In this document: piece after piece, positions 170-60,989 of the stretch
How positions within the stretch are numbered: position 1 is the first letter of the stretch
Layout: each line of letters opens with the position of its first letter
From: Octopus sinensis
Lineage: Eukaryota
Assembly: GCF_006345805.1 (NCBI RefSeq)
Contig: NW_021833432.1
Location: 1 to 64,000, forward strand
Direction of reading: 5' to 3'
DNA length: 64,000 nucleotides
Notes under the pieces: model-generated
What the model saw: the letters and a program-made list of their open reading frames with translations, nothing else
The model's database searches: none
Told to the model about the DNA's origin: nothing
Position numbers and translations under genes: made by a program

Positions 170-400
170 CTCTAATTTGACGTGAGAGATATTACAACAT
201 CTAATAACTTGGACGTCGAATCCACTTGGGATGAACCAAAATCCGGGATGGATTCAGAACGCAGGTGGCTTCTGGGTAAACCCTTCCTTTGGCTTTGGCT
301 TGTTGAATGCTATGGAATTAATAAACGCCGCTCGACCGACTAAATGGAAAACTGTACCAAAACAACATATCTGTAAAACCGCCACGACCGAATCCAACAA
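170..400 (+). CDS. PCSK1: Prohormone convertase PC1/3-like, internal exon (end of subtilisin S8 domain); in-frame TGA at 183-185
   Basis: Acceptor ttttcag at 163-169, donor gtaaat at 401. Translation from 171: SNLT*EILQHLITWTSNPLGMNQNPGWIQNAGGFWVNPSFGFGLLNAMELINAARPTKWKTVPKQHICK. This resembles the PC1/3 segment NLTWRDMQHL..WT..GW..NGAG..VN..FGFGLLNA as I recall it. Phase 2 on both sides. Not in the ORF track. Confidence 0.88.
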
Positions 401-3766: not shown

Positions 3767-3812
3767 GATATATATATACACACACACACACATATATATA
3801 TTATATATATAT

Positions 3813-4242
3813 AGGCGCAGGAGTGGCTGTGTGGTAAGTAGCTCGTTTACCAACCACATGGTTCCGGGTTCAGTCCCACTGCGTGGCACCTTGGGCAATT
3901 GTCTTCTACTATAGCCTCGGGCCGACCAAAGCCTTGTGAGTGGATTTGGTTGACGGAAACTGAAAGAAGCCCGTCGTATATAATTAATATATATATATAT
4001 ATATAATATATTATATATGCATTTGTATATTTGTGGTGAGTGTGTTTGTCCCCCTAGCATTGCTTGACAACCGATGCTGGTGTGTTTATGTCTCCATTAC
4101 TTAGCGGTTCGGCAAAATAGACCGATAAAATAAGTACTGGGCTTATAAAAGAATAAGTCCCGGGGTCGAGTTGCTCGATTAAAGGCGGTGCTCCAGCATG
4201 GCCGCAGTCAAATGACTGAAACAAGTAAAAAAGTAAAAGAGT
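3813..4242 (+). mobile_element. SINE family A, full length
   Basis: aggcgcaggagtggctgtgtggtaagtagc head; ggcaccttgggcaa CORE-like block; internal (TA)n; tail gactgaaacaagtaaaa. Highly similar to 12286, 48373 and 60793. Confidence 0.9.
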
Positions 4243-5775: not shown

Positions 5776-5933
5776 GAAACTTGAAGACGGTGGAGAAGTG
5801 AATATTTTGGTTTCGAGTGATCGATGTGAAAACAGCTCAAATGAAGTGATGTATTTAGAACATATACAAGTTGTTATGAATATCGATCATACTCACAGAG
5901 GAGACTTGGAAATCTGGGTTATATCACCAAGTG
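5776..5933 (+). CDS. PCSK1: PC1/3-like exon, P domain start with RGD motif
   Basis: ttctgcag|g acceptor and g|gtaagt donor. KLEDGGEVNILVSSDRCENSSNEVMYLEHIQVVMNIDHTHRGDLEIWVISPSG contains the LEH.Q and RGDL P-domain motifs. The aa|g junction with the previous exon is in frame. Confidence 0.93.
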
Positions 5934-6249: not shown

Positions 6250-6383
6250 GGACCAGGACGAACTTGTTGCAGAAGAGACCAAAAGATTCATCACCAGAAG
6301 GATTTAAGAATTGGTCATTTATGTCGGTACAGACGTGGGGAGAAGATCCTTTAGGAATGTGGAAACTTATTGTTAAGGACACT
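6250..6383 (+). CDS. PCSK1: PC1/3-like exon, P domain
   Basis: ttcttttag|gg acceptor and act|gtaagt donor. GTRTNLLQKRPKDSSPEGFKNWSFMSVQTWGEDPLGMWKLIVKDT is closer to PC1/3 ([22 protein letters not shown]) than to PC2 or furin, from recall. Confidence 0.93.
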
Positions 6384-7744: not shown

Positions 7745-7986
7745 AGAATCGTTAGAGTGTCGGACAAAATGGTTAGTGGCATTTCTTCCTTTTTTTTCGT
7801 TTTGTAACGTTCTGAGTTGAAATTCCTTTATTTTTCAAGGTTTCGGGGATGATAAAATAAATACCTGTTAAGAACTAGATTACATGTAATCAACTGACCC
7901 TCTCTCCTTAGAATCTTCAACCTTGTACGAATGTTTGACGTCGTCGTCGTCGTCGTCAACGTCATCATCATCATCATCACCATCAC

Positions 7987-8022
<36 letters not shown>

Positions 8023-8145
8023 TATTGTTGTCCGTCTTTACGATCTGAGTCGATAAATAAAGTACGAGTTTGAAAACTGAAGGAACATCGCAATCGACTT
8101 AACACCTCCCGCAAAATTTCAGGCATTGTGTCTATAGTAGAAAGG

Positions 8146-8208
<63 letters not shown>

Positions 8209-8228
8209 TTATTATTATTATTATCATT
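7745..8228 (+). mobile_element. SINE family B pieces with (CAT)n insert; (ATT)n tail ends at the exon acceptor
   Basis: gaatcgttagagtgtcggacaaaatggttagtggcattt head; tctatagtagaaaggattatt tail as at 1272. Confidence 0.7.
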
Positions 8229-8232
8229 ACAG

Positions 8233-8352
8233 GAATTATTTCCAAATTCATCTGGTATTGTGAAGAATGTAACCTTTGTGTTCTATGGAACCTCTGAAGC
8301 ACCTGACCATGTTATCAGAGCAGGAGGACAACGTCTCTATCCTACGGATATG
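8233..8352 (+). CDS. PCSK1: PC1/3-like exon, end of P domain
   Basis: cattacag|gaa acceptor and atg|gtaata donor, phase 0/0. ELFPNSSGIVKNVTFVFYGTSEAPDHVIRAGGQRLYPTDM; GTSEAPDH resembles PC1/3 GTSSQPEH. Confidence 0.85.
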
Positions 8353-10069: not shown

Positions 10070-10342
10070 ATTCCGATCGCACCGACGTCGTCTGACGAAT
10101 TTCTCAAACTTTCAACAGCGGAACTCAACTCAATACTGAACACACCAACCAGAGTCAGCGGGACAGAGTATGCACCAACATACAGCGCGAAAGTACGGAC
10201 CAAACTGGAATCGGCACGCTATAAGTATCTGCTGAGACAACTCAAAGAAAAAGAAGCGGAACAGGAAAGGAGGTGGCAGCGACAACGGGACAGACAACTG
10301 AGGAAATGGAAGAACCAATACGACCGGTATTCCTACTACTAA
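10070..10342 (+). CDS. PCSK1: PC1/3-like terminal coding exon, soluble charged C-terminal tail
   Basis: Long polypyrimidine tract plus tttatgcag|att, phase 0 matching the previous donor. 90 codons to TAA, non-repetitive, no transmembrane segment. Confidence 0.75.
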   Translation: MPIAPTSSDEFLKLSTAELNSILNTPTRVSGTEYAPTYSAKVRTKLESARYKYLLRQLKEKEAEQERRWQRQRDRQLRKWKNQYDRYSYY

Positions 10343-12234: not shown

Positions 12235-12285
12235 TTTTTTTTTCTCCAAACTTCATGTTTATGCAAGTTCCGATCACACCGACGT
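12235..12285 (+). pseudogene. Short degenerate duplicate of the terminal-exon acceptor and first codons, fused to a SINE
   Basis: tttttttttctccaaacttcatgtttatgcaagttccgatcacaccgacgt aligns with 10035-10088 (ttttttctctccaaacttttttcttgtttatgcagattccgatcgcaccgacgt). Confidence 0.75.
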
Positions 12286-12463
12286 AGGCGCAGGAGTAGC
12301 TGTGTGGTAAGTAGCTTGCTTACCAGCCACATAGTTCTGGGTTCAGTCCCACTGCGTGGCACCTTGGGCAAGTGTCTTCTACTATAGCCTCGGGCCGACC
12401 AATGCCTTGTGAGTGGATTTGGTAGACGGAAACTGAAAGAAGCTCGTATATATATATATATAT

Positions 12464-12525
<62 letters not shown>

Positions 12526-18654: not shown

Positions 18655-19560
18655 TTTGAAAACGTTATGAAAAAATACCGTTAAAAATGAAGGGAAATTA
18701 CTCTGTTATAACTCTGCTTTGCCTGCGTACTTAACATCGCTCGCATTTTTCGTCATAAAAAATTATATAAAACCATAAAAATATATAAAAATATATAAAA
18801 ATATATAAAATCTTCTTGGGACATAACACAGAAAGCATGTTCTATCCGTTTTCTTTAGGAGACCAAAAACGTAACAGAAATTTAGTCACATGTGGGCATG
18901 ATCCGAAAAGCTCTGTCCTTGTATTTAGACATGTGGTAGGGTCTAAGCTGCTTTTCCAGATAAGCCATCTCTCCATGTCGCATAAACCGCACCTTCCGCT
19001 GCCGTTAGTATAGGGCTTACATCTGGCCAAAATCTTCCATTGTATGTTATAATCGACACCTTTATCTCTTAAAGACCAAATATGATTGGATAATTGTGTC
19101 GCTTTTCTTTTGTTCCAGTGCCTAAAGCTCAAAGTGTGGTTATTGAACCTGGCCTTGAAATTACCCTCTGTTAGGCCCACGTATTTCTTCGTCGAAACGG
19201 TGTCTTTAGTGGTTATAGAGTTTACGGTAGCTTCATATATGATGGTCTTGGACATGCAAGCTCCATTTAGCGGGCACAATTCTTTATTCCTGCATGAACA
19301 GCTGTTTTCTTCTTGTGTTTTTAGTATGTTATGATTGATTATGTTTTTAAAATTGTAGTTAAACTAAAACTAATTTTAAATTGTGTCTATTGAAGAGTTT
19401 CCTATAAGCATGGTTAACTGGAAAATGTCTATCTATCAGTGCTAGGAAATATTTACCTATATTGAAGGCCACCTCGGGTGAGTAAGGGGGCGTAAACCAG
19501 ATGACCTTCTTATTTCTATTATTCCTTTTCCTTACTGTTGGGCTGGTGATAGGTGTATAT
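18581..19560 (-). mobile_element. 5'-truncated Penelope-like retroelement: thumb, Cys linker and GIY-YIG endonuclease
   Basis: VIWFTPPYSPEVAFNIGKYFLALIDRHFP, CSCRNKELCPLNGAC, IIYEATV...YVGLTEGNFKARFNNH...RCGLC. Frameshifts upstream of ORF 18842-19279. Confidence 0.9.
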
Positions 19561-19770
19561 TTTATTTTTTCGCTAAAATTTTTAGCGTTAGGGACGTATT
19601 AAGGGATCCATTTGTTTCGTCAGGGGAGATATTCCTGTACATAGAAATCAGAACAGATTTTATAGTGAAGAGAAATATGAGTGATTTAAATGGCTTTATA
19701 GCGGTTTTGACTGCTATTCTAAAGTTGTATGGGTTTTGTAATTGTGACTTGTTCCTAATTATAAATATGC

Positions 19771-22875: not shown

Positions 22876-23308
22876 TCATTCTTTTGCTTGTTCCAGTTAT
22901 TTGACTACGACCATGCTGGAGCACAGTCTTAAAGCTTGTTAGTCGAACAAATCGGCCCCAGGAATTATTCTTTGTAAGGCTAGTACTTATTCTATCGTTC
23001 TCTTTTACCGAACCGAGAAATTACGGGGACGAAAACACACCAACATCTGTTGTGAAGCGATGGTGGAAGGACGAACACAGACGCAAAGACATACACACGT
23101 AAATAGATATGTAAACACACACACACATACACACATATATGTATGTATACGACGGGCTTCTTTCAGTTTCCGTCTACCAAATCCCCTCACAAGGCTTTGG
23201 TGGGCTCGAGGCTAGAGTAGAAGACACTTGCGCAAGGTTCCATGCAGTAGGACTGAACCCGGAACCATGTGGTTGGGATGCAAGCTTCTTGCTACACAGC
23301 CATACCTG
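22876..23308 (-). mobile_element. SINE family A, near full length; tail-to-tail with a + strand 3' half at 22620-22870
   Basis: Reverse complement of family A head, core and tail. Confidence 0.8.
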
Positions 23309-30133: not shown

Positions 30134-31385
30134 TCGCAGCAACTCAACCGTTGTGACTGGACTACCAGAAGGCTTTCGATAGTAAGCCACATGGGTCGAT
30201 TAACAGGGCTTTACAGTTAGCCAATATTCAACCATCACCGGCGAGTGCTATTGAACGCCTGACCAAAACCTGGCGCATCACGTTGTACCTTAAGAGTGAT
30301 AAGTTTCAAATCGAGTCGGAGAGAATCCATTACCTGAAAGCATCTTTCAAGGTGATAGCCTGTCGGTGTTACTCTTTGTCCTCTCATTAAATCCACTGTC
30401 ATACCTGCTCACAAAAAAATAGTGACCAAAGAAATGGATCCAGAAGTATCTCTCATGTTTTCTTTGCCGACGGCATGAAAATGTATGGATAAAATGTATG
30501 CATAAAAAGCAATTGAACTTATAAGCCAATTTTCTATAGACATTAGGATGAAATTTGGTGAGTCTAAATGTGCTTTTTGACAGTAAAGCAAGGAAAGGTT
30601 GTGTACATTCCTCTGAAATCCTAAGAATAACTGGCTTGGCAATACAACCTCAAAAGTCAGGTGACAATTATAGATATTTCGGACGGGATGCAAATGTCAG
30701 ATATGATGCACCTGTAAATAAGGAGAAGACCAGAAATGAATATCCACGGTCATTAGAAATTTCAGCTTACAACAAACATTTTCCACAACGCCTTTGCAGT
30801 GCCTGTCCTCACGCCTACATTAGTTCTTCTGAACTGAATGGGGGAGATGTTCGAATCAATGGAGATACAGACAGTCTATATTCCCCACGCAATGAAGGTG
30901 GCTGTGGTCTCAAATCTATACTGATGTCATTTGAAGCACGGATTGTGACACTGAAACGACATCTGCAGCAGAGGAAAGAGACCAATAAATATCGTGTCTA
31001 AGTTTTTACTATCACACGAACAACATAAAAAGGCCAGATATTGTTGTGTGGGACCATAAAGAAAAGACATGCTGAGTTTTGGAAATCAGTTTCCCACTGA
31101 TCACTGGGCTTCTTTATACGACGGGCTTCTTTCAGTTTCCGTCTGCCAAATCTACTCACAAGGCTTTAGCCGGCCCTATGATATAGTAGAAGACACTTGC
31201 CCGAGGTGCCACGCAGTGGGACTGAACCCGGAACCATGTGGTTGGTAAGCAAGCTATTTACCACGCACTCACTCCTGTGCCTATATAGAACATCTATAGC
31301 ACATTGATAAGAAGTTTGCAAATCCAGTACCCAAGATACACTTTCAGCTTCCTACCCATTATTATTGGAGCAATAGGCTACATCA
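30134..31385 (+). mobile_element. Decayed Dong/R4-type LINE: RT and endonuclease, interrupted by a SINE at 31118-31285
   Basis: DYQKAFDS.PH, FQGDSLSVLLFVLSLNPLS, FADGMK, LYSPRNEGGCGL, RPDIVVWDHKEK; PIIIGAIG after the SINE. Confidence 0.85.
31118..31285 (-). mobile_element. SINE family A head and core
   Basis: acgacgggcttctttcagtttcc...gtgccacgcagtgggactgaacccggaaccatgtgg...actcctgtgcctat. Confidence 0.85.
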
Positions 31386-34363: not shown

Positions 34364-34485
34364 CATGTTCAATATCACTCACTGCTTGGCACAATGGGCA
34401 GGTGCCTTCTACTATAGCCTTGGGCCGACCAAAGCCTTTCCAGTGGATCTGGTAGATGGAAATTAAAAGAAGCCCGTCGTGCATG

Positions 34486-34530
<45 letters not shown>

Positions 34531-43004: not shown

Positions 43005-43410
43005 TCGCATTCCTTTAAGAAAACAACTTGCTGAGTGATACCCAGCATGGTTTTCGACCAGGTAAGAGCTGCCAGACCCAGCTCTTGCAGCACTAGGAAA
43101 GGGTGTTGAGGCAGTTACTGAACAAATCAAATGTGGGAGTAATATACTTTGACTTTGCAAAAGCTTTTGATAAAGTGGATCATGGTATGATATGCCACAA
43201 GCTGCGTGATCTTGGCATAGCTGGAAAATTTGAAGAGCGGTTATATGACTTACTGAAAGATAAAAGTCAGGTAGCAGTGGCCAATGGAGCCACCTCGAAG
43301 AAAAAACAAATAGTGAGCAGTGTTCCACAGGACACTGTCTTGGGACCACTGCTTTTTATAGTGGCCCTCTCAGATATGCCATCAGCTGCCCAGATAGCCA
43401 CCCTTGCAAG
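43005..43410 (+). mobile_element. CR1/L2-group LINE RT fragment
   Basis: VIYFDFAKAFDKVDHGMICHKL...[15 protein letters not shown]. Confidence 0.88.
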
Positions 43411-43976
43411 TTGAACCAACGTATGTTTCTGACAAATGAATCGCATTTGAAGCCATGGTCTTCTAAGATGAAGATTGGTTTGTCTTCGGAGCAGTCATAG
43501 AATGTAATTTTTGTGGCGGGAACACAAATTATTTTGGGGTCATATTCTCGCATATCAGTTATAAAAAGTTTGTATAAGTCTGTAAAGACAATTTCGCAGT
43601 CAGGTATTCAAATACAGCAACCGAATAATTTTTTGACTTTGCTAGAGGATGGACTTATTTTGCTGGTGAGCTGAGGACAATAATATGCAGTTTAATGCTG
43701 AAAAATATCTTCTGGATTAACAATATCTGGAAAAGATTGCAAGTTGAACCAACGTATGTTTCTGACAAATGAATCGCATTTGAAGTCATGGTCTTCTAAG
43801 ATGAAGATTGGTTTGTCTTCGGAGCAGTCATAGAATGTAATTTTTGTGGCGGGAACACAAATTATTTTGGGGTCATATTCTCGCATATCAGTTATAAAAA
43901 GCTTGTATAAGTCTGTAAAGACAATTTCGCAGTCAGGTATTCAAATACAGCAGCCGAATAATTTTTTGACTTTGCT
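43404..43976. repeat. Recent direct duplication, 240-bp unit (43404-43643 and 43737-43976)
   Basis: Only ~3 substitutions seen; 93-bp spacer. Confidence 0.92.
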
Positions 43977-45889: not shown

Positions 45890-47062
45890 AACTTAGAATA
45901 ACTTAGAAAGGTTTTGGCCAGTATTGGCCCAGGCCATGTCTAACTTAATAGCACCACCTGGCGAAGTCTTTCAGGTCAGGATTTGGGCACCAAGGCCCAT
46001 TCGAGCAGAGAGTTATTGTTTGCGGAGACATATCCGGGTGTGGGTGGTTTGTCCGGTACTGTTTGAAGGAATTTGTCCAAAGACTTCTTGAATTTTGTGT
46101 GGTCAGTTTCTTTTTTGACGTGTCCTGGTGTAATGTTGAAGAGAGCAGGTCCAATTGAGGTGAAATAGTTGTGCCGTATTGTCGTTATGTGATTTAGATT
46201 TTTGTTGTGGACGGATGGCACGTGGTCCAAGCCTTGGATGCATTTTGAAGGTGATGCCAACATCATTCGGACAGTGCTGATGGAATATTTTCCACATCAT
46301 ACAGATAATGTAGCGTTCACGGCGTCGTTGGAGTGAATACAATTTCAGCTTCTCTAGTCTACCCCAGTAGTCAAGGTCTGACATGCCATCTATCTTTTTT
46401 GTGATTGACCTTTGGGGAGCTTCAATTCTCATAATATTTTGTTTTGTGTAGGGAGACCACAGTGGACAGCAGTATTCAAGGTGGGGTCGGGCAAAAGTGG
46501 AGAAGAGAAGGATAATAGCGTGGGAATTTCTCGACTGGAAGGTTCTGAGAATCCAGGAACACATTCTGCGGGCCATGTCAACTTTGCTGCTTATATGTGT
46601 AGCCCAGCTTATGTTGTTGTCCACTGTTACTCCCAGGTCTCTGATGTTGTTGGATGCCATGAGAATTTCTCCAGAAGGAAGAGAGTATGGGAATTTCAGA
46701 GCGTCCTCCCTTCCAAAGTGGATCAGTTCGAATTTGTCTTCATTTAGCAACATGTTATTCTTTTCCGCCCATTGGACAACAGCCAGTAGGTCTGACTGAA
46801 GGTTTATTCGGTCATCCACGCCATTGATGACCTTCTGGAGCTTGGAATCATCAGCGAAGGTTCTGATGTTACTGTGTTTGATGGTGTCAGTAATATCATT
46901 TATGTAGATGATGAAGAGAAGTGGGCCCAACACAGTGCCTTGTGGGACACCACTGGTGACTTTGGCTGGGCTGGATTTGACTCTTTCGACTATAACATGT
47001 TGGGATCTGTTAGACAGGAAGCGCTTGATCCACTGCAGCAGCTTTCCAGTAACACCAATATA
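45890..47062 (-). mobile_element. 5'-truncated CR1-group LINE (RT C-terminal half) with short tandem-repeat tail
   Basis: [43 protein letters not shown]; one frameshift near 46250; tail (ttctaagtta)2. Confidence 0.93.
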
Positions 47063-47063
47063 T

Positions 47064-47150
47064 AAACGAAATTTTTACAAAATATCAACATTCTCCATCT
47101 CGCAAACAATTTCTCTCTCTCTCTCTCTCTCTCTTCTATGTATATATATA

Positions 47151-48303: not shown

Positions 48304-48372
48304 CATATATGTACATATATATATATGTATATATATATACACACATATATATATATATATGTCTGTATATAT

Positions 48373-48795
48373 GAGTGGCTGTGTGGTAAGTAGCTTGCTA
48401 ACCAACCACATGGTTCCGGGTTCAATCCCACTGCGTGGCATCTTGGGCAAGTGTCTTCTACTATAGCTCCGGGCCGACCAATGCCTTGTGAGTAGATTTG
48501 GTAGACGGAAACTGAAAGAAGCCTGTCGTATATATGTATATATATATATGTGTGTATGTGTTTGTGTGTCTGTGTTTGTCCCCCCCCCAACATCGCTTGA
48601 CAATCGATGCTGGTGTGTTTACGTCCCCGTTACTTAGCGGTTCGGCAAAAGAGACCGATAGAATAAGTAGGCTTACAATGAATAAGTGGGCTTACAATGA
48701 ATAAGTCCCAGGGTCGAATTGCTCGACTAAAGGCGGTGCTCCAGCATGGCCGCAGTCAAATGACTGAAACAAGTAAAAGAGTAAAGAGTAAAGAG
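48373..48795 (+). mobile_element. SINE family A, near full length
   Basis: As 3813; contains an internal duplication ggcttacaatgaataagt x2. Confidence 0.9.
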
Positions 48796-49249
48796 TATAT
48801 ATATATATATATATAATATATGTATGTATATGTATATATATATGTGTGTGTGTGTGTGCAGAAAGTTGAAAAGTAACATACGTGTTGATATGTATAACGA
48901 AAATAGGACAAGGTAGAAAATGCTAAAATAATTTTATCATGAAGGACATTTTAGTACCAGTTTCAGTCTTAGCGACATTAAAAAATTTTTAAAGTAATCA
49001 TGAAAAAGAATTCAATTGTGGAACAGTATAAGGACACAGGGAAAAAAATGTGTCGAAGCTGTCAGGAGGCGTTCGATGCCTCCTAGGGCTATACAACGGT
49101 GGTGTACCCCCTACTGTCACGTTCTTGTTAGATTGACAGTATACAACCATTCTATCGCCCCACCACCGTACATATCTCTACGAGAGATTTAGAAATTCAA
49201 TATTTCTTAAATGAAATGTTGTTTTTTCTAATATTTCCATAATTTTCAA

Positions 49250-51010
49250 ATACGTCGGACATTTTCCTTTTTCATTACTAGTATCCTTCGATGTTGTCAA
49301 CCTCTGCTCTAATATGCCCCACAGCCTAGGAACAGAGGCAATCCAATTCTGGATAGAAAATTACTCCAATAAACTCCCACACTGCATCAAAAAAGAATTC
49401 GTAGTAGAAGGGCTAAAATTCATCTTGGAGAATAACCTTTGCGTCTTCAAAGACAACATCTATCGACAAAAATCGGGGACAGCTATGGGTACGAGAATGA
49501 CCGCCTCCTTTGCTAACCTAGTCATGAGATATCTAGAAATCAGTCTTTATCGTAAGGTACTAGAAAAATACGGCAACCCATTCTGCCTCTACGTAGAAAA
49601 TAACTGGAAGAGGTATCTGGATGATTGCTTCATTCTTTGGCATGAAAGTATAGAAAGACTTAAAGAATTTCAAGTGCTTCTAAATGAACCTAATATAAAC
49701 ATTCAATTTACGATGGAATATAGCCATCAACAACTTCCATTCCTCGACATCCTTATTAAGAAATTCAACAACAATATAGAAGCGGACATATACTATAAGC
49801 CCACGGACTCCAAGCAATATCTACCGTTCAACTCATGCCACCCCAGACACACTACAATGAATATCCTCTTCAACCTGGCAAAAAGGATTTGTATCATAGA
49901 ATCTAACTAGCAGTATCGCCCGGCGTTGCTCAGGTTTGTAAGGGAAATAACTATAAAGCATTTTTAGAGAGTTATAGCCAAAAAATAGCAAAAAATGGAA
50001 AAAAATGATGGTAAATTTTTTTGAGAGTAAAAAAAGGTGGAGTTGCGTCCCCTAGACAGTTTGCGGTTTGTGTTTCTGATTCTCGACCCCATGTCGAATT
50101 TATCGATTTTTTTCAGAACTGGGGGAACTTTTCAAAATTTTCGCTGCGTTAGTTTTGAATTATGACATTGGGTTATGTATGTGTTAAGTTTCATCAGAAT
50201 CGGTTGAAAGCCGTGGTCAGGGTGAGGGTACAAGCAAACAGACACACAGAAACACGCACAGACAAACTGCCGTTTATATAGAGAGAGATACAAGCACCAA
50301 AGACACACGACTATATAGCCTAAAGGATACACTCATCAGCAGGAACTACCCACCTTCACTAATTGATATAGGCTTTCAACGTGCCCTACAACTCAACATC
50401 CTCGAACTCAGACATCCCAAACTAAGGAAGGATTTACAAACAAAAGCTCTTCTATACATCTCCACACACAACCGCCTTAACAATGAAGCCTTCGACACCA
50501 TCCTCCAGAACATTCATCTACTAAAAAGTGACACAGAATAAATATAATCCTTCAAATGCATACCATCATAAAGAGTAAAAGACAACCTAAGTCAATGAAA
50601 ATTCTCCAAACACAAGCCCAGCTACACTCGGCAGCAACATTAAAGGCGTGGGTAAAAAAATGTGGAAGATCTAACTGTGGTATATGCGTCAACCTAATTG
50701 AGGGATCGGAGTTCATATGTGCTTCGGAAAAAGTAATATATGTATAAACTTACTCAGGGTGTCGAGAGCAATATATAGGCCAAACCAAAAACAGTCTACG
50801 CCAAAGGATGATCCTACATAGATCCCAGATTAAAATTCGGGAATACAGAAAAAAAGCATTCGGCGAACACATCGATATTTACGCCATAAACGAACAATTG
50901 AACTTCAGAAGTTTCCTCTGTATAAATTCAGGGACGATGCAACCTATAATCAGCGCATTAGCAAAGAGCTATATTTAATCGCAAAATATAAGCCCTTTTG
51001 AATGCGTCCA
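49250..51010 (+). mobile_element. Penelope-like retroelement: RT, thumb, linker and decayed GIY-YIG; interrupted by a Helitron
   Basis: LVSFDVVNLCSN, GTAMGT, RYLDD, LPFLD, YKPTDSKQYL.FNSCHP; then RNYPPSLI, KCGRSNCGIC, CREQYIGQTKNSLRQRM. Confidence 0.92.
49907..50288 (-). mobile_element. Non-autonomous Helitron
   Basis: Minus strand begins TC and ends CTAG after a GC-rich hairpin-like segment (cgccgggcg); inserted in an AT dinucleotide with no TSD; removal restores the PLE frame. Confidence 0.85.
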
Positions 51011-56114: not shown

Positions 56115-56881
56115 AAACTTAGATAAACTTAGATATGTTTCGATCAAAGATTGGTCCAGGCCATGTCTAACTTAATAGCACCACCTGATAGGATTATTTG
56201 AATCCTGTTTAAGTCAAGTTTTGCTTATGGTCCATTCAAGTAGTGAGTTTTTGTTGGGTGAGTTTTATCCAATTATGGGTGGCTTAACTGGTATTCCTTG
56301 AAGGAATCTATCCAGACTCCGTTTAAAGTTGATGGGATCATTTTCCTCTTTGATCTCTTTCGGGACAATGTTAAATAGGGCAGGGCCTGTTGAGGAAAAG
56401 AAATTATGTTGCAGTGTACATGTATGCTGTGATCTTGAATTGGGCAGGGGACGTATGGCCCGTGGTCCCAGTCTTGGATGAACCTTGAAGCTAATGTTCA
56501 GGTCGTTTGGGCAAAGTTGGCGGTATATTCTCCACATCGTACAAATGATGTACCGCTCACGGCAACGCTGGAGAGAGTAGAGTTTCAAGGCTTTAAGGCG
56601 ATCCCGATAATCGAGAGGAGCCATGCCTTCAATTCGTTTAGTGAGTGCCCTCTGGGGTGATTCAATCCTGGAGATGTTTTGTATTGTATGGGGAGATCAC
56701 AGTGGGCAGCAGTATTCGAGGTGTGGCCGTACAAAGGAGGAGAAAAGTGGTATGATGACACCTTGTTCTCTGGACCGCAAAGTTCTTAAGATCCAGGAAT
56801 TCATCCTATGAGCTATATCGACCTTCTTGTTGATGTGTGCACTCCAACTGAGATCGTCATCAACAATTACACCCAGGTCTC

Positions 56882-56882
<1 letters not shown>
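56115..56882 (-). mobile_element. 5'-truncated CR1-group LINE, same family as 45890-47062
   Basis: RDLGVIV, RPHLEYCCPL, LKALKLYSLQRCRERYII, TGPALFN; tail (tatctaagtt)2. Confidence 0.9.
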
Positions 56883-56922
<40 letters not shown>

Positions 56923-57051
56923 ATAATAATGCAATACGAAATTATACGTATAAAAGTAAATAAATGGTACATCGAGGCACCGATATTTACTGGAAAATAG
57001 CAATCGTAATAAATACGACCCTATTGTATAAATATATGTACATATACATAC

Positions 57052-58415: not shown

Positions 58416-60792
58416 GTGTGTTTGTGTTTATAGATGTATATACCTGTATATACGTGCAAATATACACACATACATATATTCATATAGAAATTAAATAAGT
58501 TTTCAAGAACCTAAATCTAGAGTGCAAGATATTTACAGAAGATAAATGTGTTCAGGAAATTTTGACATAGGACATTACTTTAAGAAGAAATAACTAAACC
58601 CAAAACAGACACCAACAATTTGTTTATTCAAAATAGAAGTGGATTCTCTTGTAAGCTGAAGTCTATCAAGAAAGTAAATAGATTATACCCAGAAATATTG
58701 ATGAACTAATGAGCCTTTGGTCAATAGTATGATAAAGAGTAGTCTGCAACTCTCTTGGTATCAAAATCATTTTGAAAGAAAACCGAAGGAAACAGAAATG
58801 GTCTACCAAAGATCCTAAACTTAAAAGTTTTACCAAGCAAGGTAGACAAAAGAAATCACGCCCTTAAAAACAGCTGGAGGCGGGATACTGATTCACAGAT
58901 GAAAAAGTAGGGATCTATCTGGAAATAACCGGAAAAGACAGCTTATAGGTGAGGATGATGGTGAACAGTCGTCGACGGCGTAAGCTCCATAGGAAGCGAA
59001 GGGCTCGAGAGGAAGACGTTGTCTAATATTTCCTTCCTGTTTTAAAGATGGAGTCACGTGATTCGTGGAAATTTGGTCGTTATTCTAAGTATGCAATCAG
59101 ATATTATCGATGGCATTGACAATGAGTGATTCAGGGTGTAAAGCGTTACTTAGAAAACCATACAGGAGTGATAATTTCTTCTTTAACTACGTGTTTTTCT
59201 GAATTATATTACACTAGGTAGTAAAACAGTCATGGCACTTGAATTTGAACTTTTGAACAAGAAAGGAACTACATGAAAATTTGTCAAAGCACCTCGTACA
59301 AAATTGTTGAGACTTCTCTTATGCTCTGTTGTATTCGCATGCACCTTATTATGTACTTCTGTCGCACATACGAACACACAGACACACATATTATAAGCAT
59401 GCATTCATGACACAACACTATGCTAATAATCACAAATCACTTTGTACACTGTGAATAAAATCTATCTTCTCTTTATAAAAGTAGTCGGTTTTTGGCGTCC
59501 TTTATTCATTTACTTTGGCACTGTATATAAACATGTAGTGTGGCTTATAAAATATGTTATGTTGGGATGCGGCCGTGCGCTGTACAAGAGGAGAAATATG
59601 TCACCAAACTCCTCACGTACGGTCGTAGTCTAACAAATTCTTTAGGAGCCATATTAGTGAAGAACCCTAGTTTGTTAGGGTTCAAATACTGATGCCCAAG
59701 TCAGTACTAAGTTTTCTCTTTTAATACCGAGACTATTGAGAGAAAGAAAAGAAATTCTCAGTCTAGAGACCTGGCTTAAATGCTTACAAAAATCTCAGCT
59801 ACACTAAAGTTCCACAAGTGTCACGTGGGAGTGTTATATAGGGTGACATACCACATTTCCTCTTCAAGAAATAGTATGATCTTTAAGCAGACTTCCACAC
59901 AGTTTCCATTTACCAATTTCCATTTGAAAGGCTTTTGTCTTTCGGAGCGTATGGTAGAAGGTGCATTTTTCAGTTACTGTCCGGCAAAATCGAATCTGAA
60001 GCTACACACGTAGCTGCGAATCGATCTTCTGAATATCACGACGAACACCTGCCTTTTATATACATCAGCCTATATATTGATGGTTAATACATACTTGCAT
60101 GAAGTTGAGAGTAAGAACAGAAAAATGGCGAAGGAATTCAAACAGAAAAAATAAACATTTTGATCACAAAATAAAATGAGTTATACAAGTTAATCTGAAA
60201 AATAAAGGGATTTCTGCCAGGAGACAGTTATTGAATTTTAGTTGGTTTAACAATCCAACCGACCGAAATCCAACTAGTGGCTTAGAAAATGAGTGAAGCT
60301 TGCAAAAGCACACCCTGGAGCGGGTATCAATTCAAACCATAATCGAATAGTTAATTAAATTACAAATCAACCTTAATAAAATGAAGATGGTTAAAATATG
60401 AGAATAATTAATTAAACTTGCAAAAAGAGACAGAATGCTAACAGAAATGTAATGCGGGGCAGTAGGAAGCAACTATGAATATTTATACAGTGAAGAAGAA
60501 ATATAAAAATCTTATAATAAAGAACAAAACGAAGAAGGATTTAACACACAATTGGCATGTAGCATGTTACTAAAGAAAACATTGTTTGAATGGGGGGGGG
60601 GAAGCAAGAGAAGAAAACGGGGGATTGATTAAATTCCATTAAACAATGAAAGACGACATGAAATACAATAATAAAGATTGAAGATCAACATTGTCATAAT
60701 ATCCTAAATAAAGAGATGTGTTTTGCATTATCAAAGCAGAAGCCAAATGGCCAGATGGTCAATGCTAATTCAAATGCCAAGTATTTGCATAT

Positions 60793-60956
60793 AGGCGCAG
60801 GAGTGGCTGTGTGGTAAGTAGCTTGCTAACCAACCTCATAGTTCCGGGTTCAGTCCCACTGCGTGGCACCTTGGGCAAGTGTCTTCTGCTATAGCCCCGG
60901 GCCGACCAATGCCTTGTGAGTGGATTTGGTAGACGGAAACGGAAAGAAGCCTGTCG

Positions 60957-60989
<33 letters not shown>

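Follow-up and report, generated by a model that had tools for sequence, protein, structure and literature searches.

Does the animal carry the stop codon that its assembled genome shows? The window considered here is the whole stretch of DNA that was analysed, 64,000 nucleotides (64 kb) from one end of a contig of Octopus sinensis, and it opens in the middle of a proprotein convertase gene. In the first exon that the window contains, an in-frame TGA (183-185, + strand) occupies the near-invariant Trp position of the LTWRD motif. The letters from 177 to 200 are ttg acg TGA gag ata tta caa cat, which translate as LT*EILQH where kexin/furin-type convertases show LTWRD(V/M/L/I)QH, and the frame around the stop reads SNLT*EILQHLITWTS. 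The initial annotation had placed a TGA in the LTWRD motif at 177-200, and both its coordinates and its letters agree with the sequence and with the alignment to furin given below. The observation of a TGA is therefore correct; its cause is most likely ordinary.

We begin by considering the gene in which the stop is found. The window starts inside an intron, and the upstream exons with the catalytic domain are outside the window. The intron contains (TA)n followed by (CATA)n microsatellites (1-130), which end about 40 nt upstream of the first exon, and it closes with a polypyrimidine tract and a 3' splice site (141-169, + strand; cag at 167-169). Five exons follow on the + strand. Exon A (170-400, 231 nt) encodes the end of the subtilase domain and is followed by the donor gtaaat from 401; it begins with one nucleotide of a split codon, ends with two, and translates as (x)SNLT*EILQHLITWTSNPLGMNQNPGWIQNAGGFWVNPSFGFGLLNA...KQHICKTATTESN(K). 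Exon B (5776-5933) has AG/GT splice sites and starts the P domain (...VMYLEHIQVVMNIDHTHRGDLEIWVISPSG), exon C (6250-6383) continues it, and exon D (8233-8352), whose acceptor comes directly after an (ATT)n microsatellite, ends it (ELFPNSSGIVKNVTFVFYGTSEAPDHVIRAGGQRLYPTDM). Exon E (10070-10342) is the terminal coding exon, with a 90-codon basic C-terminal tail and a TAA at 10340-10342. The position and phase of the intron at 169/170 match those of the exon in the genomic contig of a relative (L001) and of exon-level open reading frames such as P0026.

When the five exons are joined, the frame runs for 304 codons and the TGA at 183-185 is the sole stop before the TAA. All the boundaries are AG/GT with a pyrimidine tract, the phases fit, and the ten splice signals are intact. 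The claim in the initial annotation that the splice sites and the downstream exons are undamaged is thus borne out, with canonical AG/GT sites and a frame that stays open to the TAA. No second copy of exons A to E is found within the 64-kb window. No further exons of the host gene are evident at 10400-64000 among the open reading frames of at least 65 aa, few of which were scanned against Pfam, and this remainder, about 54 kb that is rich in repeats, has the look of intergenic or intronic DNA. A cryptic GTGAGA donor at 182 was considered and rejected, because its use would delete conserved residues. Long (ATT)n/(AAT)n microsatellites are also seen at 1480-1660 and 7900-8232. The latter abuts the 3' splice site of exon D (the intron ends in attatcattacag and the exon begins with GAATTA), and the polypyrimidine tract at this site is essentially the microsatellite itself.

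The identity of the gene can be approached from both of its domains. The P domain follows the subtilase domain directly and is recognised by Pfam (PF01483, E=2.6e-25, 88.8 bits where the cutoff is 21), and a phmmer search of PDB chains matches furin (1p8j) over residues 280-467 with E=2e-34. These two matches confirm the earlier naming of the gene as a convertase. The RGD-type motif of the P domain is present as well, with HRGDL in exon B aligned to RRGDL in furin. Using the 71 residues of exon A that follow the stop, an exhaustive HMMER search finds 296 relatives, the best being 59% identical (P0002). The closest relatives are of the PC1/3 type: the exon-level open reading frames P0002 and the human-type P0026, and the fish-type full-length P0033. 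The gene has two signatures in common with P0033 and P0026, NPGW...VN..FGFGLLNA and SPxGFKNWxFMSVxTWGExP, and one relative in the cluster carries the JGI name "proprotein convertase subtilisin/kexin type 1". A tree built by neighbour joining places the gene beside the PC1/3 representatives. Another group described among the kexin-like convertases is PCSKX, which is invertebrate-only (bioRxiv 10.1101/802215).

From these similarities we read the locus as a PC1/3-like (PCSK1-like) gene for a neuroendocrine proprotein convertase, of which the window has the 3' half; the preference for PC1/3 over PCSKX is tentative. The features that it has in common with PC1/3 (PCSK1, family S8B) are the P domain, an alignment to furin and kexin over the whole length, and a short basic tail. 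It differs in that the gene, as assembled, has LT*EIL in place of LTWRD, and the exons for the Asp-His-Ser catalytic triad and the oxyanion-hole Asn are upstream of the window. The C-terminal tail in exon E shows no Cys-rich or transmembrane region and no Pfam match. Its last segment (ARYKYLLRQLKEKEAEQERRWQRQRDRQLRKWKNQYDRYSYY) is strongly basic and probably helical, and is reminiscent of the helices that neuroendocrine convertases have at the C terminus and to which a role in granule sorting is ascribed.

The next question is [quoted passage not shown] The alignment of NLTxEILQH with NLTWRDMQH of furin is gapless (E=2e-34, phmmer against PDB chains), and of the 150 best relatives about 110 contain [LIVM][TSN]WRD, with two exceptions (WRC and WRE). 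In the frame as assembled, LTWRD(V/M/L/I)QH is absent, and it appears only with one base added and one removed. The third forward frame reads FDVRDITTS, in which R-D-I (aga gat att) falls at the exact aligned position but one base off. It is preceded by the tg of 183-184, which is without the final G of a Trp codon, and a surplus base stands before caa cat. With the G supplied after tg, followed by aga, gat and att or ata, the surplus base dropped, and caa cat, the motif LTWRDIQH is restored. The assembled letters at 183-195 are TGAGAGATATTAC, and the form with both indels mended is TGGAGAGATAT(A/T)CAA. The stretch that is out of frame is 185-194 (+ strand), with a G missing after 184 and the surplus base being T192/T193 or A194, and it is situated within a low-complexity run, (GA)3(TA)2.

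Could the R-D-I in the neighbouring frame be a coincidence? In the six-frame translation of the 64-kb window, RD[IVLMAF] has a frequency of 5.4e-4 per position, so that its occurrence by chance precisely at the aligned place, in either of the two alternative frames, has a probability of about 1e-3. The lesion is therefore a shift of frame and not a divergence by substitution. The HMMER alignments all begin at or after LQH (query residue 3 or later), and the E-I that follows the stop is therefore unmatched in any relative. Judged from the displaced R-D-I, the stop is the product of one lost base (the G of TGG) and one extra base (a T or an A in ATATTAC) 9-10 nt on. The orthologous exon in L001, the closest relative, is also 231 nt long with identical intron phases, and the net length of exon A is therefore unchanged. 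The initial annotation had proposed a compensated shift of about 10 nt. This proposal stands, with a -1/+1 pair, R-D-I one base off, and an exon length kept as in the nearest relative.

Outside these few nucleotides, we ask whether the gene shows signs of decay. Conserved columns were defined as those at least 90% conserved among 41 relatives, which gives 32 columns. The gene departs from the consensus at five of them: the W, R and D of the lesion, one V>I and one L>V. Intact relatives depart at 1-7 of the 32, a range that includes the five seen here. The root-to-tip distance of the gene, 0.37, is ordinary when compared with the 0.31-0.44 of its relatives, and it therefore gives no signal of relaxed constraint. 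From this comparison the gene looks fully constrained except for about 10 nt.

A close orthologue would show the ancestral codons directly, and several searches bear on whether one is available. In a word-indexed protein search exon A alone has no match, and exons A to D joined have one match only, a rotifer protein with 43% identity. The open reading frame that follows the stop (231-404) has no exact match in public contigs, and an exact 31-mer scan of metagenome contigs gives 0 matches. With HMMER, no orthologue near enough to show the ancestral codons is found, the best relative of exon A being the one at 59%. A control search using the reverse-transcriptase open reading frame of a LINE-like element in the window gives best matches that are 54-76% identical, with no cephalopod names among them. 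The missing convertase orthologues are therefore uninformative about the gene.

Combining the geometry of the lesion with the condition of the rest of the gene, we consider it probable that the TGA is a local consensus or polishing error of a long-read assembly and is absent from the gene of the animal. In such a case one base would have been dropped from TGG and one base added 9-10 nt later in the short run GAGAGATAT(T)A. The run is about 50 nt from the long TA/CATA microsatellite, a kind of sequence in which the alignment of reads and polishing with short reads are least reliable. For the extra base, a plausible origin is a heterozygous synonymous site, ATA/ATT, that collapsed into "ATTA". 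The true sequence would then read L-T-W-R-D-I-Q-H. Both indels fall within 10 nt, and the other 900 or so coding nucleotides have no indel; this confinement favours a single local event. There are 0 N in the 64-kb window despite dozens of microsatellites and SINE copies, which points to long-read contigs. The sequence itself shows the -1/+1 geometry, the kept length of exon A and an intact, conserved remainder; from these we infer a technical and not a germline origin of the error, and the long-read basis of the assembly is likewise inferred.

Errors of this type have been described. Long-read errors, mainly indels, yield false frameshifts and premature stops (PMC12007338), and indel errors near allelic variants, arising from misaligned reads in collapsed diploid assemblies, are documented (PMC8445201). 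The present case resembles these long-read and collapsed-haplotype artefacts in having single-base indels in low-complexity sequence, near repeats, that lead to an apparent stop in a conserved gene that is otherwise intact. It differs from the usual ones in two respects. The two errors here compensate each other, leaving only about 10 nt out of frame. In addition, and this counts against an artefact, the affected runs are very short (1-2 nt: GG, and T or A), whereas long-read errors concentrate in long homopolymers. Spiralians generally keep one copy each of the six orthology groups of kexin-like convertases (bioRxiv 10.1101/802215), and an intact copy of PC1/3 is therefore expected in this animal.

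The main competitors of an assembly error are those in which the stop is real. Jointly, a real null allele or a young pseudogene is a minority possibility that we take seriously, and the two parts of it are not equally likely. As a germline null, the lesion would be a complex -1/+1 change on one haplotype, heterozygous or at low frequency, that the assembler happened to pick. The transcript, with a premature stop and four exon junctions downstream of it, would be degraded, and the other allele would supply the enzyme. The TGA is unambiguous in the sequence, and the undamaged rest of the gene fits a very young lesion. The only pair of repeats in the window with at least 97% identity, and hence the sole pair for gauging the indel noise of the assembly, is a direct tandem duplication of about 240 nt (43404-43643 against 43737-43976), which by self-BLAST is 98.75% identical with 3 mismatches and 0 gaps. 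Being gapless, the pair gives no sign of indel noise, which is in line with a real allele, but with one pair this is a weak test. Such an allele is nonetheless unlikely: loss-of-function alleles are rare per gene in strongly conserved genes, and two single-base indels 10 nt apart require two events or a rare complex one. Nor could the second indel have been selected as a compensation for the first, since it is the shifted stretch that produces the stop. A recently pseudogenised gene or paralogue that is fixed in the species would need PC1/3 to be dispensable or replaced, or an intact copy to be elsewhere in the genome, and we rate it below the null allele. Independent losses of PCSK1 have occurred in Caenorhabditis, Drosophila, Strongylocentrotus and Ciona (bioRxiv 10.1101/802215), so a real loss is not unthinkable, and the gene is fairly divergent from its relatives (over 200 aa the identity is 43-44%, and in exon A it is 59%). 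Its likeness to a unitary pseudogene is that of a premature stop in a gene that keeps its introns. Where a pseudogene is expected to show several lesions and relaxed constraint, however, this gene has one stop in 304 codons, kept conserved columns and an ordinary branch length, its ten splice signals are intact, and no second copy lies within the 64-kb window. All six orthology groups are, moreover, usually kept in spiralians (bioRxiv 10.1101/802215).

The other alternatives leave the stop in the genome and have the cell circumvent it. In one of them, the TGA belongs to a single-copy, expressed PC1/3 gene, and A185 is edited from A to I so that UGA is read as UGG (Trp), giving LTWEILQH. Editing of this kind cannot restore the Arg-Asp: E-I-L would stay where relatives have the near-invariant R-D-(V/M/L/I). 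The RNA around the site does not help either. The structure predicted for 131-430 gains no stability over shuffled sequences (z=+0.14), and within 8.5 kb the strongest duplex that 165-215 can form has -28.1 kcal/mol compared with -29.5 +/- 2.6 for shuffled sequences. In these two tests no stable RNA duplex around A185 is found, and TA microsatellites account for all the inverted repeats that are found. On its 5' side A185 has a G, which is the least favoured context for ADARs. What speaks for editing comes from other systems: recoding is extensive in coleoids, a general fact only (PMC4384741), and in fungi there are premature stops that editing restores (PMC10776026). The likeness to restorative A-to-I editing in Fusarium is that of a stop in a conserved gene that can be read as Trp. 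In Fusarium, however, it is UAG that is edited, in sexual stages and by a different enzyme (PMC10776026), while here we have UGA with a 5' G, no predicted duplex, and neighbouring residues that stay wrong. Nothing that we found favours a rescue by editing, which we rank as the most improbable of all the explanations. Hardly better is the group of explanations that call on recoding or splicing, namely a double ribosomal frameshift, read-through of UGA or selenocysteine, an alternative 3' splice site, or a decayed duplicate exon with a working copy upstream. The last of these gains some room from the upstream part of the gene being beyond the window, but no second copy of the exon is found in the window, the acceptor at 169/170 is at a conserved intron position, and the other 72 codons of exon A are conserved. 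There is no in-frame AG acceptor downstream of the stop (the AGs at 187 and 189 give wrong frames), and alternative splicing therefore cannot bypass it. Two opposite frameshifts 10 nt apart are without precedent, and nothing is in favour of a double ribosomal frameshift or of selenocysteine. The order given by the initial annotation, with an assembly error ahead of a null allele or pseudogene and editing as the weakest option for leaving EIL in place of RDI, is one that we share: there is no decay, no acceleration and no dsRNA partner, and some 110 relatives have WRD.

What the stop means depends on which of these explanations holds. If it is an artefact, as we think probable, it matters only for annotation: gene finders would cut the PC1/3 model short, mark it as low quality or leave out the exon, and the locus needs correction from the reads. 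A stop that is real and fixed would mean that an animal with a large peptidergic nervous system had lost, very recently, a convertase that processes neuropeptides. A real stop that editing rescues would make an essential gene dependent on RNA recoding, and its protein would have WEIL where WRDI is otherwise universally conserved.

We turn our attention to the other elements in the window. Rfam and tRNA scans of the window give nothing. A SINE-like repeat of about 170 nt (GGCGCAGGAGTGGCTGTGTGG...GAAGCCCGTCGTATATA) is present in at least seven copies that are 83-92% identical, each of them followed by a TA/CA microsatellite. Five copies are on the + strand (3812-3985, 12285-12476, 34380-34498, 48321-48549 and 60789-60977) and two on the - strand (23146-23302 and 31115-31287). 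The repeat is unrecognised by ARAGORN and Rfam, and it may correspond to a SINE that is abundant in octopus, which it resembles. Remnants that look like Penelope-type retroelements, with the frame broken several times, are situated at 49215-50975 (+ strand) and 18845-19598 (- strand). They contain a reverse-transcriptase-like open reading frame with a YLDD motif and no Pfam match, and the open reading frames that come after it match GIY-YIG weakly (E=0.006 and 0.0045), in each case short of the Pfam cutoff. The LINE-like reverse transcriptase used for the control search is an intact open reading frame of 323 aa (46106-47074, - strand; RVT_1, E=7.5e-12), and a degraded related copy is found at 56268-57020 on the same strand. 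The intact frame has more than 5000 relatives, and the closest, 76% identical, is on a 934-nt contig of the NCBI assembly GCA_024449705.1.
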